Of a DNA stretch of 64,000 bases, positions 3,163 to 63,936 are shown piece after piece (positions within the stretch are counted from its first letter, which is position 1; every line of letters begins with the position of its first letter). The notes beneath the pieces are model-generated. The model searched no databases. It worked only from the letters and a program-made list of their open reading frames with translations, and was not told the DNA's origin. The position numbers and the translations under genes were made by a program. Location: the sequence record NC_016571.1, one strand, 5' to 3'.

Positions 3163-3819
3163 ATGTCCGAAGTTAAAGAAGTGGTTGAAAAGAAAGAACC
3201 TATAATCGCAGAAATTTCCATAAACAAGTCATTCAATCATGATGACATTGTGACCCTGACCGAAACAATCAGAAAAGGTGTGGATAGCTTCGACACGCTT
3301 ATCTTCTATATGAATAGCATGGGCGGTCAAATCAACACAGGTCTGGTATTCCGCGATATCGTCAATTCCTGGGATAAGAAAATAGTTTATATTTCTGAAC
3401 TATTGAATGCCAGTTTGGCGACTGCACTTCCCCAATGCGGTGATGTATTGCGTCTAGCTTATCCGACTTCCAGATTTATGCTACATGACAGCACTTATAC
3501 CTATAAAGGTACACGAGCCGATGTAGCTAACCAAATGGAATATACCAGTCATGCCGATGACGTGTGGGATAATGCCTACATGGAAGGCATTGGGTTGACC
3601 AAGAAGGAATATGCCAAACTAGTTGCTTTCGATAACGTTATGTATGCCAACAAGTTCATGATGTTGGGAACTAAAGGTGGCATCGATGGAATGATTCTTA
3701 AGCGACTCAATGTTGCCCAATATGTTTGTAATACGCGTACGGGTATCAAAATGATTGACGTTCGTTATCATACCCGCAACGATGTTCCTAATTTGCCCTT
3801 GTATAAAGAAGGTGAATGA
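3163..3819 (+). CDS. ClpP-like (S14 family) protease subunit
   Basis: FYMNSMGG (cf. ClpP YINSPGG), ASLAT (catalytic Ser), SRFMLHD (His), D.VMYA...GIDG; start moved to ATG3163 after GAGGA. Confidence 0.65.
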   Translation: MSEVKEVVEKKEPIIAEISINKSFNHDDIVTLTETIRKGVDSFDTLIFYMNSMGGQINTGLVFRDIVNSWDKKIVYISELLNASLATALPQCGDVLRLAYPTSRFMLHDSTYTYKGTRADVANQMEYTSHADDVWDNAYMEGIGLTKKEYAKLVAFDNVMYANKFMMLGTKGGIDGMILKRLNVAQYVCNTRTGIKMIDVRYHTRNDVPNLPLYKEGE

Positions 3820-4388
3820 TGGAACTACTTCACTGGTTAGCTGAACATCGAGTAGTGATTATTACCTCAATCTCCGCTTATCTACTGCTGGGTGTATTCT
3901 CACTCAGGTGGACGATAATGGGGCTGATTGGTTATCACAACGATCCCAAGGGTAACTGGATGCTACTGGTGTTCATCGTTCTTTGGTGGATACCTGCCGG
4001 TTATCTTTTATGGGCTGTTATTTGCGGATATCTAAATAGCAAGTTCGAACCCAATAACAAAGTTAAAGTAGTCGAACAGTCAAATCAACCAACTCTCTTT
4101 GTTTGTGTTGGTAAGGGAGGGAACTATGAAGCTCTCGGATTTGGCACCCCATTAGGTTCCATGGCTATTGCTCCAAATGACTTAATGTACTTTGGGCTAT
4201 CGCTGGGAGCCGGTACATGTCGAGATGAGAAACTGTCAGTCTATGCAGCAGATCAGCTCGGCGTGTTTTATTATGAAGGTTCAGTCACCAATGATGAGAA
4301 GCGAGTCTTCTACATAGATGTCGGGACCAACAAAATGTATCACAGAACTACCACAGATTTCTCACAACGCATGAAGCGTATTAAGTAA
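3816..4388 (+). CDS. membrane protein with C-terminal soluble domain
   Basis: Two N-terminal hydrophobic segments; 190 aa. Confidence 0.7.
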   Translation: MMELLHWLAEHRVVIITSISAYLLLGVFSLRWTIMGLIGYHNDPKGNWMLLVFIVLWWIPAGYLLWAVICGYLNSKFEPNNKVKVVEQSNQPTLFVCVGKGGNYEALGFGTPLGSMAIAPNDLMYFGLSLGAGTCRDEKLSVYAADQLGVFYYEGSVTNDEKRVFYIDVGTNKMYHRTTTDFSQRMKRIK

Positions 4389-6370: not shown

Positions 6371-6649
6371 ATGAACATGAAGAAGATAGCTGCGGCGAAG
6401 AGTGGGGGTAGAAAACTTCTGTTGAAGTCAGATACGTTGTTCCCTCTCATCTTCATGCTTATCGTGGTAACCTACGCTCTATCCCATGGTTACAGGATGT
6501 TTGCTGTTTTCAGTATGGGGTTGATCGTAGCAAGGATTGGGGAGATTATCTTTGAGATAAAGAGTAGTCTTTTCGATAAACCTTTTTTCCACTGTCTGTT
6601 GCTAATTGGAATTCCACTACAATACGGATGGAATGTGATTACCAACTAA
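6371..6649 (+). CDS. hypothetical membrane protein
   Basis: RBS AAGGAG; 2-3 hydrophobic segments. Confidence 0.65.
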   Translation: MNMKKIAAAKSGGRKLLLKSDTLFPLIFMLIVVTYALSHGYRMFAVFSMGLIVARIGEIIFEIKSSLFDKPFFHCLLLIGIPLQYGWNVITN

Positions 6650-7805: not shown

Positions 7806-8096
7806 ATGAAGATATCACATAAGTTAAGGGTGCTAATCTTATTGTTGGGTTTGGGAGTTACTTTTGTTGTATTAGGTAAAACAATCAAGCGTCATTATAC
7901 TGATGCCCAGCTGATGCAACATTGTATTAACGTAAACAAAGGAGACATACTTCCCTACCCTGAAGGATGTATGAAACCTATTCGGATAAAGAACGACATA
8001 TTCGAATTCATTAACGTTAATGGGCAAAAGGAAATGTATGTTGTTATAAAAATGAGAGATAGTACATTTCGTTATGCCAAGGTAAGAAATTCATAA
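7806..8096 (+). CDS. hypothetical protein with N-terminal TM anchor
   Basis: 96 aa; LRVLILLLGLGVTFVVLG. Confidence 0.65.
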   Translation: MKISHKLRVLILLLGLGVTFVVLGKTIKRHYTDAQLMQHCINVNKGDILPYPEGCMKPIRIKNDIFEFINVNGQKEMYVVIKMRDSTFRYAKVRNS

Positions 8097-20192: not shown

Positions 20193-20969
20193 TTACAGTT
20201 TTTTAGCTTCATCGATCTGCAATTGCAGAATACGAGTCAGTTCACTTAACTGGGCTACCATCATACCAGCAAAGGTAATGGTTTCTACCAGTTCAGAGAT
20301 AGTGTCGTTCAGTAGACGGCTTGCGCTGTCATCCAGAACCATATCGCCTGAGTCGATTTTCTTCTTCAGCAGGTTAACAACGTAAACCACCTGGTCAGCA
20401 GATTTAGACAGTACTTCTATATCACGTGATTTAAGTGTCTCAACAACACGGTTGAAGTTCTGATCAACTTCCAGAGCAGTACCGAAGTTAGGGTACATCT
20501 GGTTCAAGGCACGAGTATAAACCTTGGTGTCTTCAAAGACCAGCTTAGCTTGTTGTTTGGTTTCATTAACCATGATCATCGCATCGACATTGCGAATCGA
20601 GTAAGGAACTTTACCCGTTGCTGCAATAGACTTGATGCCACGATAAACAGCGTCAGTTTGAGACTGAGCTAATTTAACCAGAGGGACTGCTTTCAGCACG
20701 AAATCAACATACTCTTTAAACGACATTTTGTCGGCATTAAAGAATACTGGAGATGGGATATGTTTGATAGAAACATCAAAGTAAACATTTCTGGCGGTGA
20801 GCTGTTTCCAAACTTCTTCACCTTTTACGGTGTGAATAGTTTTGTTAAAGTTCTTCGCGTTGAAGGAGTCGATCCCCAAGCTCAGTTCTTTAAAGAAGGA
20901 TGTCAGACGCTCGCCAACTGTTAGCGCTTCTGCACCAACGATTGCATCAAGATCAAATGTAATAGACAT
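20193..20969 (-). CDS. putative virion head protein (phiKZ gp153-like position)
   Basis: Start ATG20969; N-terminal VGAE/A site; next to UvsX. Confidence 0.55.
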   Translation of the reverse strand: MSITFDLDAIVGAEALTVGERLTSFFKELSLGIDSFNAKNFNKTIHTVKGEEVWKQLTARNVYFDVSIKHIPSPVFFNADKMSFKEYVDFVLKAVPLVKLAQSQTDAVYRGIKSIAATGKVPYSIRNVDAMIMVNETKQQAKLVFEDTKVYTRALNQMYPNFGTALEVDQNFNRVVETLKSRDIEVLSKSADQVVYVVNLLKKKIDSGDMVLDDSASRLLNDTISELVETITFAGMMVAQLSELTRILQLQIDEAKKL

Positions 20970-56059: not shown

Positions 56060-56611
56060 ATGGAATACAAGAAGACAAATAGAGTAATGTTGGGAGATGA
56101 TAACACTGTCGATGCGATAACCACATCAAGTGAAATCATTAATGACTCTATTGAAGAAGATAAACCTATCTATAAAGGTGATTGCGAAATAAGGTTTTAT
56201 CTGGGAGGCCGACCGGTCATACTTCATAATGACACCACTACCAGCGATAACATAACTTCGTTGAATGAGTATATCAACAAGCTTAATCGCATTATGGAAA
56301 TGTCATTAGAAGTTTGTGCTGAGATGGACTATAACCCTGATGAGACTTTCTTAGTAAGGGAATTCTTAAATCCGTTTGTTCCTACGGATAGGCTATTCGG
56401 TGGCACGTTGCTAATACTGTATGGTGCTCGGTATAAACAAGTTACCTTTGATATTGCTGACTGTAGTAACAAACTCCGTCGTACATTTAAACCTGATCAA
56501 TTCAGAGTGTTCACCCAAAAGCTTTGCGAAGCAATTCGTAATGCTATCGGTGAATGTTGGGATATAAAGGATCTCATTAATGAATCTAAACAAAGTCAAA
56601 CGCGAGTATAA
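56060..56611 (+). CDS. hypothetical protein, EFLN paralog family
   Basis: FYLGGRPVILH, REFLN, FDIADCSNKLR. Confidence 0.75.
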   Translation: MEYKKTNRVMLGDDNTVDAITTSSEIINDSIEEDKPIYKGDCEIRFYLGGRPVILHNDTTTSDNITSLNEYINKLNRIMEMSLEVCAEMDYNPDETFLVREFLNPFVPTDRLFGGTLLILYGARYKQVTFDIADCSNKLRRTFKPDQFRVFTQKLCEAIRNAIGECWDIKDLINESKQSQTRV

Positions 56612-57149
56612 GAAAGCCCGCCGAACAATGTACGGTCAGGCTCCTGATATGCGCGGTGTTACTTCTCTGGCTCAAGTCACTAAGCGTTCTGAAGGGCCAG
56701 TGGTTTTAATAACTAAGGAGCTTCACGGTCAAATCACTTTTTACCTGGGTGGTCGTCCTGTTACCATCCATGGGAAGACGGCTGTTAATAAAGCGGGGCG
56801 TAAGGATAAGGAACCTGAGATCTATCGTGCTAAGATAGAGCTGTTACGTAAGGTTATCTTTGAAGCCTTCGTTCATCTGAAATCTAAAGATGAAGCGCAG
56901 TTCATGTCTCGTGAATTCCTTAATCATGAAGACGATGATAATGACTATGGTTCGTCTATTATGATTCGTGTTCCTGAGTTCCAGAACAAACACGAGTTCT
57001 GTACATTTGAAATTGCGTCTTGTCATTTCAAAATCAGAATGAATCCAAATCGTCAAGAGTTAATCAGACACTTGAAATTCATGATTAAAACTATTGACCT
57101 ACATATGTTCGATTACGAACAAGCTTATCAGGTATGGAAGGGACAATGA
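56580..57149 (+). CDS. hypothetical protein, EFLN paralog family
   Basis: FYLGGRPVTIH, REFLN, FEIASCHFKIR. Confidence 0.75.
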   Translation: MNLNKVKREYKKARRTMYGQAPDMRGVTSLAQVTKRSEGPVVLITKELHGQITFYLGGRPVTIHGKTAVNKAGRKDKEPEIYRAKIELLRKVIFEAFVHLKSKDEAQFMSREFLNHEDDDNDYGSSIMIRVPEFQNKHEFCTFEIASCHFKIRMNPNRQELIRHLKFMIKTIDLHMFDYEQAYQVWKGQ

Positions 57150-57917: not shown

Positions 57918-58325
57918 ATGGAAGATGGTTCCCTGAAACACCGCCGCATTGATACGTTACGAACAACGTGGAACTATCTTCGTCGTCGTATCGTTGATGC
58001 ACACCCAGCTCGTCGTCCTAAGGTAGAGGTGTATACTTCTGTTGATGCAGAGTTTAGACGTCTGGTTCGCGCCATTTATACGCGTAAGTTAAGTGTTCAA
58101 AGTTACAAGATTATCCAGTTCGGTAACATCAGCTTTGATCACGAATATATCGACTTACGCTCTCGTGACTCTCATCTCGTTCGTTTGTCTTTTAAAGATA
58201 TCGATTCCTTTAGTGACTGGGCATTTGCTGAGTGGCCTGATAAAGAAGTCCAAATGAAAAAGATGATTCGTATCGGTAATCAGACTTATGAAACCTATGA
58301 GACTGAAAAGCCTGGAGATCTTTAA
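57918..58325 (+). CDS. hypothetical protein
   Basis: 135 aa. Confidence 0.65.
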   Translation: MEDGSLKHRRIDTLRTTWNYLRRRIVDAHPARRPKVEVYTSVDAEFRRLVRAIYTRKLSVQSYKIIQFGNISFDHEYIDLRSRDSHLVRLSFKDIDSFSDWAFAEWPDKEVQMKKMIRIGNQTYETYETEKPGDL

Positions 58326-58927
58326 TGACCTGGGTGAAACGCACATATAAGCGTGACTGGTTACAACGTTCTCCTTATTTGAATACGGTATCTTTCCGAC
58401 ATGAGTTATCTAATCAGACTCGTTGGGAAATTAAACCAGAATCCATTGATAAGAATGAACGTAAGTTAACATGGGCTGATGATTATTATCCAGTGGAGGA
58501 GATGATCGCAACATTTGAGCTGGTCTTCTCCATTGGGTCTGAAATCATTAAACTTCATGCTAACGATTTCATCGGTCCTTCTGATGCTTTGAAGGACTAC
58601 GTTAGAAAAATAACTTTAATCAAGGAAGTCATAGGACACTTTATAAGGGACTACAAGAGCTTCCATGACAAAGATGCACCATTTATCATCAAGGAGTTCC
58701 TAAACTCGTCTGAGGGCCCTTCAGCGATCTATACGAGTACTATAGCCATCTCCTGCTCATCCACCCATTCTTTCTTCTTTGAGATTGGGAGCTGTGACGA
58801 TAAGGCAAGACTCTATATAGAAAAAGAAAAGGATTTTCTTGAGATGCTGATCAAACTACAAAAGTTTCTCAGCGGAGCGATAACTGATGCACAAGCAGCT
58901 CTCGATACGTATAAGGGTCGATTGTAA
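58325..58927 (+). CDS. hypothetical protein, EFLN paralog family
   Basis: FSIGSEIIKLH, KEFLN, FEIGSCDDKAR. Confidence 0.75.
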   Translation: MTWVKRTYKRDWLQRSPYLNTVSFRHELSNQTRWEIKPESIDKNERKLTWADDYYPVEEMIATFELVFSIGSEIIKLHANDFIGPSDALKDYVRKITLIKEVIGHFIRDYKSFHDKDAPFIIKEFLNSSEGPSAIYTSTIAISCSSTHSFFFEIGSCDDKARLYIEKEKDFLEMLIKLQKFLSGAITDAQAALDTYKGRL

Positions 58928-58943
58928 TTCAGTTGGATAAATG

Positions 58944-58976
58944 TTTGGGTATACATTATCTCTGTGTATACCCAAA
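58944..58976 (+). promoter_or_regulatory. promoter motif nested in a 12-bp perfect inverted repeat
   Basis: TTTGGGTATACA-TTATCTCTG-TGTATACCCAAA, containing TACATTAT-CTCTG-TG. Confidence 0.65.
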
Positions 58977-59002
58977 CTAATTTAACTATTAAGGAATTTA
59001 CC

Positions 59003-59581
59003 ATGAGTCGTATTTGGAACATCGTAATAGGTCTGAGCTTTTTAGCAGCTGCTTTAATCGTGGGAATGAACCCTTCCCATGCTGCTACCCCACCAGTAGG
59101 TTGGCATCTGGCAGACCCGGAAGTAAAAGAACTTTCTCATCTGAAGATCATCTCTAACCGAGGTGATCTCGGCGGTGAATTATCATTGATCTGTAATAAA
59201 GATACCAAGAAGATATCACTCACCTATAGCTTCGACGGTAAGCAATATGACTTTTATATTGTTCGTAACTTCGGTGACAGTAATCCAACAGCTGAAGGAA
59301 AGCTGCTGGTCGGTGCGGGCGATGCTTCTCAAGGTGATGTATTCTGGCATCTGATGAGGAATGATCAAGGTTTCTCTATCGATCGTTTCCCAGTAGGGAC
59401 TAAGAAGATTTGGGATGACTCTGTAGCCAAAGCTGTTAAGAGTAATGGCGATGTCACTCCTCCTGATATCAAACAGGAAGGTGAAGAGTTCTTTATCTCT
59501 GGCCCTAAAACCAATACGTTGTTAAATCATGTGGGTGCTTACTGCCCACTTGTTCCAGGCGATAATGCTCCTGTACTTTAG
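59003..59581 (+). CDS. exported two-cysteine protein 1
   Basis: Signal peptide ending SHA; LSLIC and AYCP; ATG59003 after AAGGA. Confidence 0.8.
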   Translation: MSRIWNIVIGLSFLAAALIVGMNPSHAATPPVGWHLADPEVKELSHLKIISNRGDLGGELSLICNKDTKKISLTYSFDGKQYDFYIVRNFGDSNPTAEGKLLVGAGDASQGDVFWHLMRNDQGFSIDRFPVGTKKIWDDSVAKAVKSNGDVTPPDIKQEGEEFFISGPKTNTLLNHVGAYCPLVPGDNAPVL

Positions 59582-59600
59582 TTGAAAAAGTTTACAGGAA

Positions 59601-59615
59601 TATATAATCAAATTG
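59601..59615 (+). promoter_or_regulatory. promoter motif variant
   Basis: TATATAAT-CAAAT-TG. Confidence 0.5.
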
Positions 59616-59679
59616 ACTATAAGCCTTGCGGCCTTTGTTTATTTTCAGCCCTGGTTTATCCGATATCATTGAGGTAGTT

Positions 59680-60318
59680 ATGAAGAAGATTAATTTAGTA
59701 TGGGCAGCTGCGGCAGCTCTTTTGGTTATCGCATTCCTGTACACTACTGAAGGTAAGGCAGCGTCCTACGACGTTAAAGAGAATGTGGCGGTAGTTGCAG
59801 CAGAACGTGCTGACCGTGTCGGTATTCAGGCTGACAAAGTAATGAATGGTATTACCGATGTTACCATCACTCAAAGTAAAGACGGTAATGTTCAAAAGTT
59901 CATCCTCCAGTGTGATGCGACAACTAAGTCGATCAATATGTTCTATTACCTGAACGACACGCTGGGGACTAAGGCTAAAAGCGCTACCAACTTCCGTGTT
60001 ACTGTTTACGGTAACGGGGATGAAGGATTTATCAAAGGTGGTGACGTTACTGTATTCGATGGACAACTAACTACGGATAACCTCCGTAAAGGTCTTGAGA
60101 AACTTAATGCCTTAGGCGGTGCTGGATTTATTAACTTCGAAATCGTGGAAGCTCATGACGGTATCGATAATCCAATCGCTTACTCTTATCTGATTCCTTC
60201 TTCTTATGGACAACGTATCCTCCAAGCTGTTGATGGGGTGCAAGGTTCCGAAGGTTGTGATATTGACGGTGGGTTCGTTTCGATGTACTCACTGAAATCT
60301 CTGAAAGACTCAATCTAA
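59680..60318 (+). CDS. exported two-cysteine protein 2
   Basis: Signal peptide ending GKA; FILQC and EGCD; ATG59680 after GAGG. Confidence 0.8.
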   Translation: MKKINLVWAAAAALLVIAFLYTTEGKAASYDVKENVAVVAAERADRVGIQADKVMNGITDVTITQSKDGNVQKFILQCDATTKSINMFYYLNDTLGTKAKSATNFRVTVYGNGDEGFIKGGDVTVFDGQLTTDNLRKGLEKLNALGGAGFINFEIVEAHDGIDNPIAYSYLIPSSYGQRILQAVDGVQGSEGCDIDGGFVSMYSLKSLKDSI

Positions 60319-60321
60319 ACT

Positions 60322-60351
60322 AACTCCTACTCCTTAACGGGAGTAGGAGTT
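60322..60351 (+). terminator. hairpin (CCTAC family)
   Basis: AACTCCTACTCC-TTAACG-GGAGTAGGAGTT. Confidence 0.7.
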
Positions 60352-60380
60352 ATTCATTTGTTTATTATAGGAAAAGTACC

Positions 60381-60866
60381 ATGAAACTTATCAAAGTCGT
60401 ATTTGCATTCATCGCTCTGTCCATGTTCAGTTCAACTGCCCTGGCTCAGTATAAAGAAGAACCAATCGTATTCTTCTTTGCTAATTGGAATTCCGATCAG
60501 CGCGTGGCCGCCTCTATTGAGTGCGTGAATCCAAATGCCCCTCAGGGCTTCAAAGTTACAATTGCTGATAGTAAGAAAGTAGTCCATCCGGAATACAAAC
60601 TTTACTTCGGCGTAAACAATGGTAAACAGTTCCCTGACCGTTGGGAGCCTATTGAAAACTATTCTCCATCGATCCAGACATTCATGCTGGCAATGGTGCA
60701 AAACCGCGATCTGTTCATTGACCGTAATAACCGTGATGCTGGTATGCGTTGGGGTATTGGGCGTAATGCAGCAGAAGCCAAACAGTACGCTGTTAACATG
60801 AAAGCTCGTCCTATTCTACAGGACTTCCGTAATGCGGTGGTTCTTCATTCTTGTCGTGCGCAGTAA
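60381..60866 (+). CDS. exported two-cysteine protein 3
   Basis: Signal peptide ending ALA; ASIEC and HSCR. Confidence 0.8.
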   Translation: MKLIKVVFAFIALSMFSSTALAQYKEEPIVFFFANWNSDQRVAASIECVNPNAPQGFKVTIADSKKVVHPEYKLYFGVNNGKQFPDRWEPIENYSPSIQTFMLAMVQNRDLFIDRNNRDAGMRWGIGRNAAEAKQYAVNMKARPILQDFRNAVVLHSCRAQ

Positions 60867-60875
60867 GGATTCAAT

Positions 60876-61469
60876 ATGAAAAACTTCTTTAAAGACTGGG
60901 GCTCCATTCTGGGGATCAACTTCGGATACCTGGCTATCTTGATCATCGGGCTTTCATCCATTAATTCTGCTTTCGCTAAAACTCCATTAGTCGTTGAAGC
61001 AATGGACAAGCAAACCTTCAGCATGGTTGGGATCAAAGAAGTCAAACCAGAAGGTGAGCTGGGGATTATCTTTGTCTGTCATAAAGATGAAGATGAAGCA
61101 ACTGTGGTTATTCAACAACCTGTGATTGATAATGAAGTTCCAGTGATCACCGGTTTCACTTTTGTTAAATATGATCAGAGTGGTAGTGAGTCAGTTATCG
61201 TACCTTACTCCACTGTGGTTAAGGGTATCTGGAACATCCGTACAGCTATCCGAGTTATGCGCGATCCTTCCTATTCTGGAACTTATGCTATTCGTTTCCA
61301 TAAAGCGGATGGTGGGTATGTTGAAACCCGTAAGTTCTACGATAGTGAACTCAAACGACTCTGGGGTGATCGCAAGTTAAAAGGCTGTGATACCTCGCAT
61401 GTCAAAGAAGCCAGCTCCTGGGAACATGTGGGTGAAGTAGACTATAACGTCTATAAGAAATACCAGTAA
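60876..61469 (+). CDS. exported two-cysteine protein 4
   Basis: Signal peptide ending AFA; IIFVC and KGCD. Confidence 0.8.
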   Translation: MKNFFKDWGSILGINFGYLAILIIGLSSINSAFAKTPLVVEAMDKQTFSMVGIKEVKPEGELGIIFVCHKDEDEATVVIQQPVIDNEVPVITGFTFVKYDQSGSESVIVPYSTVVKGIWNIRTAIRVMRDPSYSGTYAIRFHKADGGYVETRKFYDSELKRLWGDRKLKGCDTSHVKEASSWEHVGEVDYNVYKKYQ

Positions 61470-61515
61470 CTTATTTGTTTCATCTAAACTAATTCAAATA
61501 TAGAGAGATATTAAA

Positions 61516-62223
61516 ATGCGTAACATAATTAAAATGATTTCTGCGTTGGTACTGACGTTGTTCCTGGTGGGTTGCGATTCTGAACCTAAGTTTGACACCG
61601 ACCACACCAAAACTCCTAACACTGCTATCACTAAGGCAGTGGAGACTTCTCGTGGTGAAGTGTTACACGAAGCTATTTACGCTACTCGCGTTACTGGTAA
61701 GTCGGCTGTATTGGGTGAGGGTCTATACACTTACGGGTTTGTTATCGAATCACAATCCCGTCAGCCTGTGATGGTTAGCCTTACCTGCTCAGTTGATCTG
61801 GATGGGTCAGCAATGGCACACACCATTTTGGATAACGAGGGTAATCCTATTCGTGGTGATCAGACCATCAGTATCATGAAGTATCGCAAAGATATTAAAG
61901 ATATCCGTGAGATGGATGAGTCATCTAAACCTCTCTTCTCATTGGCTAACGGTGATACTGATATTATTACCCCTCTGACCAAGATCAAAGACTTGGACCC
62001 TGAGACGCCAATTGCATTCACTGTCGAGAAAGAACAGTCTGATGGTTATTCGTATAGTGTTGGTTGGAGCCCATTAATTCGTGCGGGTGATTTGGCTAAA
62101 GAAGTTGCCAAACTTCCACTGAAATATTGCGCAACTCTGTATATCGCAGCAGGCGAAGAAGACGTGGTTACTGGTTATACCAATAAGGAAATCGTTGGTC
62201 TGGCTAAAGCAGCGCAACAATAA
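61516..62223 (+). CDS. lipoprotein, two-cysteine protein 5
   Basis: Lipobox LFLVGC-D; VSLTC and KYCA. Confidence 0.8.
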   Translation: MRNIIKMISALVLTLFLVGCDSEPKFDTDHTKTPNTAITKAVETSRGEVLHEAIYATRVTGKSAVLGEGLYTYGFVIESQSRQPVMVSLTCSVDLDGSAMAHTILDNEGNPIRGDQTISIMKYRKDIKDIREMDESSKPLFSLANGDTDIITPLTKIKDLDPETPIAFTVEKEQSDGYSYSVGWSPLIRAGDLAKEVAKLPLKYCATLYIAAGEEDVVTGYTNKEIVGLAKAAQQ

Positions 62224-62231
62224 TGTGATAA

Positions 62232-62285
62232 GGTAAGGGAGCTGCGGCTCTCTTACCAAGTCGCCCCACCTATCTTTTATTTTTC
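62232..62285 (+). terminator. hairpin with displaced T-tract
   Basis: GGTAAGGGAGC-TGCG-GCTCTCTTACC, then TTTTATTTTT about 18 nt later. Confidence 0.65.
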
Positions 62286-62323: not shown

Positions 62324-62360
62324 ATATCTGTAAATTAATTTAACTTGAAGGAAAGTATAG

Positions 62361-63062
62361 ATGGAAAATGTTATCACCGAGGATGAAGCCAAGGTCTTAG
62401 CAGATGCTGATTGGCAGAAACTGTTCAATTACAAAATGCAAAAAGATTTACTCCGTTGGTGCATATATTCCATTTCCCTCAATGACGTTGCTCATAACTT
62501 AGGGCACGTTCGTGATGTGTGCGAACTGGGTCGGCACATCTGCCATGAAATGGGACTGGATGAACGCACCACCTTGCTTGTTTATCTTGGATGTCTATTA
62601 CACGACATCGGGTGTCGCTATGAACGTAAGCATCATCATTTGATAGGATATGGACTCAGTTACGATCTCATCAATCGGTACTGGCCGGGTGAGTTCACTG
62701 ATGAAGAACTATTGACTGTCGCTACCGCGATACTGGAACATCGTAGCTCTAATCCCAATAAACCCACCAACCTGGTCAGTGAAATTGTTTCTGTTGCGGA
62801 CAGTGGCGCGCCTAACTTTAATAAGTATATTCGCCGGGCAGTTCAGTTTCGCTTAAAGACTCATATGGATCCGGAACTCCTTGTTGAAGATGTCTACAAA
62901 CATCTGCTGGAAAAATTTGGAGTAGAAGGTTATCACTGGGTAAGTTATCCAGATATTGGGATGGAGTTCTTTAAGCTTGAATGGGCAGAGTTCTCCACTA
63001 AGCTTTACGATGAATCTCTTACCCTTGGAAAGATCAAGGAAACCTACGAAGAGTTACGTTAG
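62361..63062 (+). CDS. HD-domain metal-dependent phosphohydrolase
   Basis: AHNLGHVRDV, LLHDIG, HH, ILEH and VADS metal-ligand pattern. Confidence 0.85.
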   Translation: MENVITEDEAKVLADADWQKLFNYKMQKDLLRWCIYSISLNDVAHNLGHVRDVCELGRHICHEMGLDERTTLLVYLGCLLHDIGCRYERKHHHLIGYGLSYDLINRYWPGEFTDEELLTVATAILEHRSSNPNKPTNLVSEIVSVADSGAPNFNKYIRRAVQFRLKTHMDPELLVEDVYKHLLEKFGVEGYHWVSYPDIGMEFFKLEWAEFSTKLYDESLTLGKIKETYEELR

Positions 63063-63070
63063 GAGGTGCT

Positions 63071-63532
63071 GTGAGCAATCACTCAGCTGATTTTATTCTG
63101 CTGGGAGGGATAGTACTAATCGTTGTTGCTATCGGCTCAACACTAGCATGGTGGATGATACATGACCAACCAGTAGGAAGCCAGCGGTTTAGCTGGCATC
63201 AACTCACTAAGAATAATTTCAATGTGACGTTGATAGACGAGTTGGGAAAAACATGGATCATGGATATTCATTATAATAACAACATCGAAGCTCCCAGTTG
63301 CACGATGAAAGGGGACCGAGGTTTAAGGATACAACTTCCTGTTGGATATTCTCGAAGCGAGTTTATTATATTCGCGAAAGAGATATCTGGAATAGCTGAT
63401 TGCTTTGCTCTGTTAGTCAAGGGCGTGGTCAGTGAAAAGGAGTTACACAAATTAAACTTCGGTCATGACGATATTGCCACTTATAGAGACTTCAAACGTC
63501 ATCTATTATTGAAAGCATTAAAACGAGTATGA
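63071..63532 (+). CDS. N-terminally anchored membrane protein
   Basis: GTG start after AGGAGG; TM FILLGGIVLIVVAIG. Confidence 0.7.
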   Translation: MSNHSADFILLGGIVLIVVAIGSTLAWWMIHDQPVGSQRFSWHQLTKNNFNVTLIDELGKTWIMDIHYNNNIEAPSCTMKGDRGLRIQLPVGYSRSEFIIFAKEISGIADCFALLVKGVVSEKELHKLNFGHDDIATYRDFKRHLLLKALKRV

Positions 63533-63936
63533 ATGTAATTCTATTTGGTGGACTTTTCATAATGGCTGTTCTGATTGGTACAGTCATCATGGGAACTTAT
63601 AAGCGAACTGTAAAGTGCAAGACTCGTGGGCATGAGTTCACAATCACTTATAAGGACCGAACTCTTTATATCACCGCATCACGTGAAAAGAGAATTCCTT
63701 CGTATAAACGAGTGGGTTCTTTTGAGTTCATCACTATCCCTGTGGGTAGAGGTCATGAAGGGATCACTCAAATAGAGAACTTCATGCAACGGTATCGAAC
63801 TTCTATATTAGCTAAGGGGTTATTTAACTTCTCAGCTAAGAGACACCCAATAAAGTTGTTTCAGTTTGATCCCGAATATGCCAGAGAGTTAGTGGAAATA
63901 CAACATAAGCTTCACTGCTTTTGCAAAATGAAATAA
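63529..63936 (+). CDS. N-terminally anchored membrane protein, likely paralog of 63071
   Basis: TM VILFGGLFIMAVLIG; ITIPVG vs IQLPVG. Confidence 0.7.
   Translation: MNVILFGGLFIMAVLIGTVIMGTYKRTVKCKTRGHEFTITYKDRTLYITASREKRIPSYKRVGSFEFITIPVGRGHEGITQIENFMQRYRTSILAKGLFNFSAKRHPIKLFQFDPEYARELVEIQHKLHCFCKMK

Follow-up and report, generated by a model that had tools for sequence, protein, structure and literature searches.

A conserved array of genes for exported two-cysteine proteins in Pseudomonas phage OBP and related jumbo phages

Pseudomonas phage OBP (NC_016571) is a jumbo phage with a genome of 285 kb and Pseudomonas fluorescens as its host. The DNA analyzed here matches its sequence at 100% identity. 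Within the 64,000-nucleotide stretch of its sequence record NC_016571.1 that was analyzed here and is referred to as the window, five consecutive genes, OBP_302 to OBP_306 (positions 59003–62223), each annotated as 'hypothetical protein' in the OBP record, encode proteins that carry an export signal and exactly two cysteines after that signal. This observation is real and well beyond chance, and the array is a conserved phage-specific module that occupies the same site in the genomes of related jumbo phages. We have little doubt about this descriptive core, i.e., an exported, two-cysteine, phage-restricted and conserved array. It is without described counterpart in family, fold and organization, and in kind it belongs among the proteins that phages encode for export into the envelope. 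Our explanation as a whole, namely that the array encodes the exported binding proteins of a phage-restricted set and that their functions include an exclusion role, is tentative and carries a probability of about 0.3.

Export signals, cysteine pairs and predicted structures

Translation showed all five open reading frames (ORFs) of the array to be intact, and a Shine-Dalgarno-like purine run precedes each of them. The G+C content of the array is the same as that of the remainder of the 64-kb window. All genes lie on the plus strand. OBP_302 (59003–59581) encodes 192 residues with a predicted signal peptide of approximately residues 1–27 (SHA/A) and cysteines at positions 64 and 181, and is followed by OBP_303 (59680–60318; 212 residues, signal peptide approximately 1–27/29, Cys78 and Cys193). 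OBP_304 (60381–60866; 161 residues, signal peptide 1–22, ALA/Q, Cys48 and Cys158) is the shortest of the five and has a short chain ahead of its first cysteine. OBP_305 (60876–61469) specifies 197 residues with a signal peptide of approximately 1–34 (AFA/K), Cys68 and Cys171, and OBP_306 (61516–62223) a lipoprotein precursor of 235 residues with the lipobox LVGC, the lipobox cysteine Cys20, aspartate at position +2, Cys91 and Cys205. Signal peptides were judged by sequence inspection and hydropathy, and the cleavage sites are predictions. A hydrophobic N-terminal segment is present in all five proteins, with a maximum hydropathy over 15 residues of 2.2–2.7. In OBP_302 to OBP_305, lysine or arginine near the start is followed by the hydrophobic core and then by the small-x-small sites SHA, GKA, ALA and AFA, respectively, and such sequence features of Sec-dependent export and cleavage by signal peptidase I are present in all orthologs. 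The signal of OBP_306 ends in a canonical lipobox that conforms to the lipoprotein pattern [LVI][ASTVI][GAS]C.

An earlier note on this DNA, made from the letters alone, had described five genuine genes with four signal peptides of the signal peptidase I type and one lipobox, and two cysteines per mature chain, the first at the end of a strand-like motif (LSLIC, FILQC, ASIEC, IIFVC and VSLTC) and the second near the C-terminus (AYC, EGC, HSC, KGC and KYC). Translation and hydropathy analysis bear this out, and the cysteine layout is kept in 88 of 90 array proteins that we collected, all 90 of which have a hydrophobic N-terminus. The two cysteines are 117, 115, 110, 103 and 114 residues apart in OBP_302 to OBP_306, and 99–126 residues (median 114) across the collected proteins. 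Given that the pair is conserved in exported proteins, it probably forms a disulfide. The window contains 69 non-overlapping ORFs of at least 80 residues. A hydrophobic N-terminus is encoded by nine of them, of which five are consecutive; under random placement, a run of five consecutive exported-type ORFs has a probability of about 7e-4.

AlphaFold models were calculated for OBP_302 (from an alignment of 23 sequences) and OBP_306 (31 sequences). The OBP_306 model has a predicted local distance difference test score (pLDDT) of 93.6 and a predicted template modeling score (pTM) of 0.83. Its N-terminal half is beta-rich and contains Cys91 within a strand, its C-terminal half is of the alpha/beta type with Cys205 ending a short helix, and the mature part is predicted to form a globular alpha/beta domain of about 215 residues. 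For OBP_302, pLDDT is 79 overall, and blocks of the mature part mostly reach 83–94. The placement of the first cysteine on a beta strand, which had been proposed for all five proteins, was checked in these two models and holds in both (strands E59–65 in OBP_302 and E85–92 in OBP_306).

Neither model found a counterpart among solved structures when compared with the Protein Data Bank (PDB) by Foldseek. The best E-value was 0.43 at a template modeling (TM) score below 0.2 for OBP_306, and 0.047 at a TM score of at most 0.22 for OBP_302. A sequence search of the PDB with four family profiles and with OBP_305 alone remained empty for all five proteins. No Pfam family matched OBP_302 to OBP_305 at E-values up to 1, and the two sub-threshold matches of OBP_306 concern unrelated families. 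PHROGs gave nothing better than an E-value of 0.0025, in a match of unknown function confined to the N-terminus; PADLOC gave no match at E-values up to 0.1, NCBIfam none for the five array proteins, and scans of the relatives against the same four libraries (Pfam, PHROGs, NCBIfam and PADLOC) yielded nothing usable. As these libraries returned no match, none of the proteins could be assigned to a described exclusion or defense family. The same holds for the inhibitors of the MliC/PliC type that the earlier note had considered: Pfam did not match and the OBP_302 and OBP_306 models found no such fold in the PDB, with OBP_303 to OBP_305 being judged by sequence.

Distribution, gene order and ortholog groups

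A tblastn search with the array proteins against 50,697 phage records retrieved relatives only from a group of OBP-like jumbo phages. These comprise Klebsiella phage N1M2, Serratia phages Yubaba and Sureiya, Kosakonia phage Kc263, Erwinia phage AH04, Edwardsiella phage pEt-SU, Pantoea phage Survivor and Shewanella phage SXP01 as well as the Aeromonas phages LAh10, D3, D6, D9, CF8 and others. In the same set of records, there was no match in phages EL or phiKZ, and tblastn did not detect the module in most other phiKZ-like phages. The presence across 'EL/OBP-like' phages that had been anticipated thus applies to the OBP-like phages and not to EL. No relative of the array emerged from two pattern scans that covered 185,579 species genomes of bacteria and archaea.

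The location is the same in every genome. The array always lies 3' of a homolog of OBP_301 and 5' of a gene for an HD phosphohydrolase, and this synteny together with a copy number of three to six array genes is seen in at least 15 phage genomes or contigs. The OBP_301 homolog directly precedes the array in the loci that we designate L002–L008, L011 and L014–L017. An additional array is located on Logan contig L011, which represents the closest relative of OBP. Five more were found when the conserved HD neighbor served as the query (four on IMG/VR contigs and one on a JGI contig), and two distant contigs also carry arrays. A pattern scan of IMG/VR and JGI with the array proteins themselves as query returned OBP itself, and a word-indexed protein search gave only one to four relatives per query. 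A full HMMER search with the OBP_306 family profile retrieved about 32 genuine clusters from 1.84 billion representatives, all of them with 200–245 residues. Three further candidates for OBP_306 relatives were rejected as noise since they are large proteins matched marginally over many short stretches: P0036 and P0039 are PAS- and cadherin-repeat proteins with marginal E-values, and P0037 has weak, unrelated domain matches only.

The array proteins fall into six ortholog groups that occur in the fixed order A-F-B-D-E-C, with F, D and E being optional (A-[F]-B-[D]-[E]-C). Group A is encoded by the first gene in every array found and group C by the last. In OBP, A, B, D, E and C correspond to OBP_302, OBP_303, OBP_304, OBP_305 and OBP_306, respectively. 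All six groups are present on L011, from which the absence of F in OBP becomes apparent. Arrays of the AH04 type have the composition A-F-B-D-C, those of N1M2 and Kc263 A-B-C and that of SXP01 A-B-D-C, and the arrays of pEt-SU and Survivor consist of A, a D-like gene and C. Cysteine spacing falls within a narrow range in each group (110–117 residues in A, 115–118 in B, 112–123 in C, 110–119 in D, 102–103 in E and 115–116 in F). Invariant residues of the OBP_302 family are G33, W34, G54, G57, G58, C64, D83, G104, G132, P154, E162, F164 and C181, and near-invariant residues of the OBP_306 family are G47, C91, D134, F141, S142, L160, S185 and C205. Relatives of OBP_304 occur in Yubaba, AH04-like phages, Survivor and SXP01 (hhalign probabilities of 92–95%). 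OBP_305 is a near-orphan, with a single homolog (P0002, 75% identity) among 5.8 billion clusters.

Some observations on individual arrays deserve mention. On L011, the group F gene, which resembles AH04_2, is located between the orthologs of OBP_302 and OBP_303 (L011:6218-6823), and its counterpart in OBP is a spacer of 98 bp (59582–59679). In SXP01 (PV593634), an intact ORF of 158 residues with a signal peptide and two cysteines (L004:3464-3940) is an ortholog of OBP_304; it is missing from the GenBank annotation, in which the array genes on either side are included, and an identical copy of the protein is present in Logan/ENA assemblies. In Kc263, the orthologs of OBP_302 (L005:2608-3222) and OBP_303 (L005:3316-3939) are named 'adhesin' and 'putative exopolygalacturonase', labels for which Pfam gave no support.

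Relationships among the five proteins

Pairwise comparison of the five proteins by blastp and MAFFT gave identities at noise level, in agreement with the low overall identity that the earlier note had reported. The note had also taken all five for products of ancient duplication. This stands for OBP_303 and OBP_306 and is only suggested for OBP_302, OBP_304 and OBP_305. On the basis of profile comparison, OBP_303 and OBP_306 are certainly paralogs: the mature regions of the two families align with hhalign probabilities of 98–99% (at best 99.1%) and E-values from 7e-14 to 2e-18, and the OBP_306 model matches 303-like proteins in BFVD. Group F is connected with groups B and C by profile–profile probabilities of 96–97%. 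A Foldseek search of BFVD with the OBP_306 model produced ten significant matches, and those that could be placed by accession or chain length belong to groups B, C and F and to a LAh10_7-like array group. The latter has no sequence signal and matches the OBP_306 model by structure only (E-value 2.5e-4), which indicates that the fold can outlast detectable sequence similarity.

For OBP_302, OBP_304 and OBP_305, a profile merged from groups B, C and F was used as the target. OBP_305 aligned with a P-value of 4.7e-4 over 114 columns that reach the second cysteine, with both cysteines and two conserved motifs matched. OBP_304 aligned with a P-value of 4.8e-3 over 112 columns, again to the second cysteine and with both cysteines matched, and OBP_302 with a P-value of 1.2e-3 over 55 columns that cover only the four-stranded beta-meander around the first cysteine. 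The three alignments are collinear and begin on the strand of the first cysteine, and they are below usual thresholds. The secondary structures that DSSP assigns to the OBP_302 and OBP_306 models were compared under the sequence-derived alignment; they agree in 42 of 55 columns and place four strands in the same register, and an equally good agreement was obtained in only 1 of 146 slid registers.

Several findings weigh against descent from one ancestor and thereby against our overall explanation. Taken singly, the profile P-values for OBP_302, OBP_304 and OBP_305 are weak, and none of the family-versus-family profile comparisons of A, D and E was significant. The OBP_306 model did not retrieve any model of groups A, D or E from BFVD. 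In the predicted structures, the second half of OBP_302 differs from OBP_306 in the order of helices and strands, with a helix where OBP_306 has a hairpin, and an alignment of the two on secondary structure alone is weak (z = 2), with the cysteines out of register. One may accordingly ask whether only OBP_303 and OBP_306 are paralogs and OBP_302, OBP_304 and OBP_305 are unrelated exported proteins that were gathered at the same site, in which case the shared cysteine spacing would be due to convergence or coincidence. This question cuts across the functional explanations discussed below and is not an alternative to any of them. The chance that a single unrelated family has a spacing of 99–126 residues is about 0.08–0.11, and the joint chance for three independent families is about 9e-4. 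It also speaks against such a mixed origin that all three proteins align with the merged profile from the first-cysteine strand onward, that D and E do so up to the second cysteine with P-values from 5e-4 to 5e-3, that the strand register of OBP_302 and OBP_306 agrees, and that a further array family devoid of any sequence signal matches structurally. We therefore consider a mixed origin rather unlikely and descent of all five proteins from one ancestor moderately probable.

Predicted location and rate of change

C-group orthologs with a lipobox are encoded in OBP, L011, N1M2, AH04, SXP01, Kc263, Yubaba, pEt-SU, Survivor and L014–L017. Those of the Aeromonas phages and of distant relatives have a hydrophobic N-terminal anchor and no lipobox cysteine, and several D orthologs have anchors without an obvious cleavage site. 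An anchor without a lipobox would have to reside in the inner membrane, and the common denominator would therefore be the periplasmic face of this membrane. In Enterobacterales, aspartate at position +2 is the classic signal for avoidance of the Lol system, and the residue at this position makes it conceivable, though uncertain, that OBP_306 is retained in the inner membrane.

Across the relatives, array genes are 30–55% identical, compared with 62–86% for OBP_301 and 66–85% for OBP_307, the genes that border the array. Phages with this degree of identity in the array genes share 62–78% in the two flanking genes. Between OBP and L011, OBP_302 and OBP_306 have 51% and 56% identity, respectively, as opposed to 73–86% for neighboring genes, and the differences are spread along the whole chain in both cases. 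This divergence could reflect accelerated evolution or allele replacement by recombination. Faster change than in flanking genes is usual where proteins are exposed to competitors or to the surface of the host, and fast divergence in combination with variable copy number is a pattern of proteins facing a changing partner. Groups A and C, plus B or D, persist in phages of Pseudomonas, Shewanella, Aeromonas and Enterobacterales. The library scans revealed no signature of a catalytic family; conservation concerns glycines, aromatic residues, acidic loops and the cysteine pair, a pattern that suggests binding.

Possible functions

Our explanation is as follows. The set would have arisen by old tandem duplication and would have kept a common architecture, consisting of an export signal and a beta-rich domain with the first cysteine on an early strand and the second about 114 residues further on near the C-terminus. 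The proteins would be made in the infected cell and would then cross the inner membrane via the Sec pathway, with OBP_302 to OBP_305 being cut by signal peptidase I and OBP_306 receiving a lipid anchor, by which it would probably be tethered to the inner membrane. In the periplasm, oxidation of the cysteine pair would create a staple by which the beta-sheet strand that bears the first cysteine holds the domain's C-terminal end. The mature proteins would act as binders and not as enzymes, with envelope components or parts of incoming phages as targets on the periplasmic side of the inner membrane, where the tethered C protein and soluble partners may form a complex. The likeliest role would be to guard the infected cell against secondary infection by superinfection exclusion or an entry block, similar to Imm and Sp of phage T4 or Llp of phage T5 and unrelated to them. 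Superinfection exclusion is our leading guess, and we hold it with low confidence.

Comparison with established exclusion systems reveals both common traits and differences. Like Llp of T5 and the Cor-type lipoproteins, the array proteins would be made by the phage in the infected cell, use the lipoprotein pathway (OBP_306 has a canonical lipobox) and act on the envelope. Llp and Cor, however, are single small outer-membrane lipoproteins that exclude superinfecting phages by blocking one receptor each, whereas OBP_306 has a predicted mature domain of about 215 residues and aspartate at position +2, belongs to a paralog array of three to six genes and is represented by orthologs in phages that infect several genera. 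Similarity of the array proteins to Llp or Cor was not detected in sequence or fold (Pfam, PHROGs and Foldseek against the PDB). Imm and Sp likewise belong to a virulent phage (T4) and act on the periplasmic side of the inner membrane, the very place where a tethered OBP_306 and its soluble partners would reside, and Sp inhibits the incoming tail lysozyme. They differ in being small membrane proteins instead of disulfide-bearing globular domains and in not being organized in arrays, and neither Pfam nor PHROGs revealed homology of the array proteins to them. Apart from the points on ancestry given above, the exclusion role has to contend with the fact that known exclusion proteins are usually encoded by single small genes and not by arrays for domains of 140–215 residues, and with the persistence of groups A and C across host genera, which argues for a conserved target or mutual binding and not for a simple receptor mask. 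As to location, only about half of the C-family lipoproteins, OBP_306 included, have aspartate at position +2, and K, N, E, G or W takes its place in the others. The +2 rule itself has not been established for Pseudomonas, where positions +3 and +4 are relevant. Moreover, no paper in the literature library that was searched deals with these genes or with exported arrays in jumbo phages.

Conservation can also be read in favor of a service to the phage itself. In a periplasmic complex, the tethered C protein might join soluble A and B or D proteins to remodel the infected cell's envelope or to hold it, e.g., through effects on peptidoglycan synthesis, on cell division or on trans-envelope machines in the course of a long jumbo phage infection, and the complex would not be directed at competitors. 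The maintenance of orthologous families in phages of four host groups, with A and C always present plus B or D, family-specific invariant residues and a fixed array order all fit such a complex, as they imply distinct conserved roles and a gamma-proteobacterial target, or mutual binding. A core complex is harder to reconcile with a copy number that ranges from three to six, with the dropping out of whole families (F from OBP, D and E from N1M2, and B from pEt-SU and Survivor) and with divergence that is fast relative to the flanks. In addition, most other phiKZ-like phages lack the module as judged by tblastn, which shows that it does not meet a general requirement of jumbo phages. On balance, we regard a function in the phage's own cycle as possible and somewhat doubtful. 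A more far-reaching idea, which we deem improbable, is that the array encodes the subunits of an unseen periplasmic assembly with a fold that has no solved relative, in which the tethered C protein and soluble paralogs would alter the periplasmic face of the inner membrane, for example in such a way that the membrane site of genome delivery of OBP-like jumbo phages could not be used twice.

Inhibition of periplasmic enzymes is another conceivable activity. The paralogs would then cover different lysozymes, lytic transglycosylases, other peptidoglycan hydrolases or proteases, in the mode of MliC, PliC and Ivy or of T4 Sp. The array proteins share with MliC, PliC and Ivy that they are predicted to be exported, compact and probably stabilized by a disulfide, and that one member is a putative membrane-tethered lipoprotein, as is MliC, next to soluble forms comparable to PliC; no catalytic signature was detected in them, the paralog set is diversified, and a conserved acidic loop in the B and C families (D134 to S142 in OBP_306) could serve as a contact loop. 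MliC, PliC and Ivy, however, are bacterial and not phage families, and the fold of MliC and PliC is a small eight-stranded beta-barrel, whereas the array proteins have larger domains of a mixed alpha/beta kind. The inhibitor families of Pfam were unmatched, the OBP_302 and OBP_306 models resemble no solved structure, inhibitors included, and sequence searches of the PDB gave no match for any of the five. We therefore consider enzyme inhibitors unlikely.

Components of the lysis machinery, such as spanin-like parts, antiholins or sensors for the timing of lysis, appear still less probable. They come to mind because neither a holin nor a spanin is annotated beside the endolysin OBP_279 or in the inspected part of the OBP record, because OBP_306 is a predicted lipoprotein whose first 30–60 residues weakly match PHROGs of Rz-like spanins (E-values of 0.026–0.23), and because T4 uses a periplasmic antiholin domain (PMC12894885). 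Phage spanins (Rz/Rz1, gp141/gp141.1 of phiKZ) resemble the array in that a phage lipoprotein is combined with other envelope-directed proteins. The spanin matches, however, are confined to the signal and lipobox region (residues 1–41 at most), and the mature part of OBP_306 is modeled as a globular domain with aspartate at position +2, unlike a short, proline-rich outer-membrane spanin (o-spanin). None of the five proteins has the N-terminal anchor and coiled coil of the inner-membrane partner (i-spanin), and three to six paralogs have no parallel among lysis cassettes. In phiKZ, the spanins gp141/gp141.1 and a holin are encoded beside the endolysin in a lysis cassette (PMC12894885), whereas the array lies about 15 kb away from OBP_279. 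The signal-only matches, the globular OBP_306 model and the distance from the endolysin argue against membership in the spanins. The endolysin gene itself (L021:10038-11024) is located between genes for RNA polymerase beta subunits and genes for virion proteins, and its surroundings are without an annotated holin or spanin, in contrast to the lysis cassette of phiKZ (PMC12894885).

With the array, a conserved, phage-only set of several exported paralogs comes into view, two of which have confident models without counterpart among solved structures. To our knowledge, the few envelope proteins that virulent phages export are exclusion factors, antiholins and spanins, and we know of almost nothing that has been reported on exported envelope proteins of jumbo phages. 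If it is true that the array proteins bind the envelope or parts of incoming phages, they would provide a view of how giant phages control the periplasm of their host, which may have a bearing on competition between phages, on control of the cell wall or on the timing of release. If a new periplasmic assembly were involved, it would constitute a new class of envelope-acting phage machinery and not a variant of single-protein exclusion. A family framework consisting of six ortholog groups, a fixed order, a two-cysteine signature and family-specific invariant residues is now available for five OBP proteins so far labeled 'hypothetical' and for some 90 relatives, and it is directly usable for structural and expression studies. 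As far as the models allow a statement, this clean and conserved module is new in structure, and it belongs to a compartment of jumbo phage infection that has received little study.

Neighboring genes, hairpins and short motifs

Upstream, the array is bordered in all relatives by homologs of OBP_301 (58325–58927, plus strand), a conserved cytoplasmic-type protein of 200 residues that is not a member of the family and has no export signal. OBP_297 (56580–57149) and OBP_301 both match phrog_25192 (E-values of 2e-6 and 8e-3, respectively) and have similar C-terminal halves, and a second paralog family, of cytoplasmic type, thus seems to be present among the small genes that precede the array. The downstream border in all relatives is formed by homologs of OBP_307 (62361–63062, plus strand), an HD-domain phosphohydrolase that matches phrog_3921 with an E-value of 1.5e-68 in addition to HD/HDIG matches and is mentioned here as context only. 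Directly 3' of this gene, OBP_308 (63071–63532) and OBP_309 (63529–63936) each encode a hydrophobic, membrane-anchor-like N-terminal segment. Both occupy the same place in the relatives with 34–82% identity, match no library family and may be part of the same envelope-directed neighborhood as the array.

Three RNA hairpins, all on the plus strand, separate the array from its neighbors and divide it into OBP_302–OBP_303 and OBP_304–OBP_306. The hairpin in the gap between OBP_301 and OBP_302 (58944–58976) has a stem of 13 bp and a folding energy of −17 kcal/mol (z = −6.8, with none of 200 shuffles as stable). A terminator-like hairpin that precedes a T-rich tract lies between OBP_303 and OBP_304 (60321–60352; 14-bp stem, −22.5 kcal/mol, z = −7.1) and was also found by a terminator scan. 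The hairpin after OBP_306 (62232–62257) has a stem of 11 bp (−20 kcal/mol, z = −5.5).

Promoter motifs had been placed at 58952 and 59601 in the earlier note. Neither is on the list of sites from a sigma-70 consensus scan, which found 12 sites in the 8-kb region as compared with a mean of 20 in shuffled sequence, i.e., not above chance. The shared upstream motifs CTAATTYAA, TTTGTTTAT and TAATTTAAC were considered as promoters and rejected, as they are not enriched in the window. The 9-mer TAATTTAAC has exactly three copies in the window (58978–58986, 62336–62344 and 20670–20678), and two of them precede the start codons of OBP_302 and OBP_307 by 16–17 nt. Counts that allow one mismatch show no enrichment of the 9-mer, and its placement may be due to chance.

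Strongly hydrophobic N-termini are also encoded by three ORFs elsewhere in the window (3816–4388, 6371–6649 and 7806–8096), which could represent membrane or lysis proteins of OBP.

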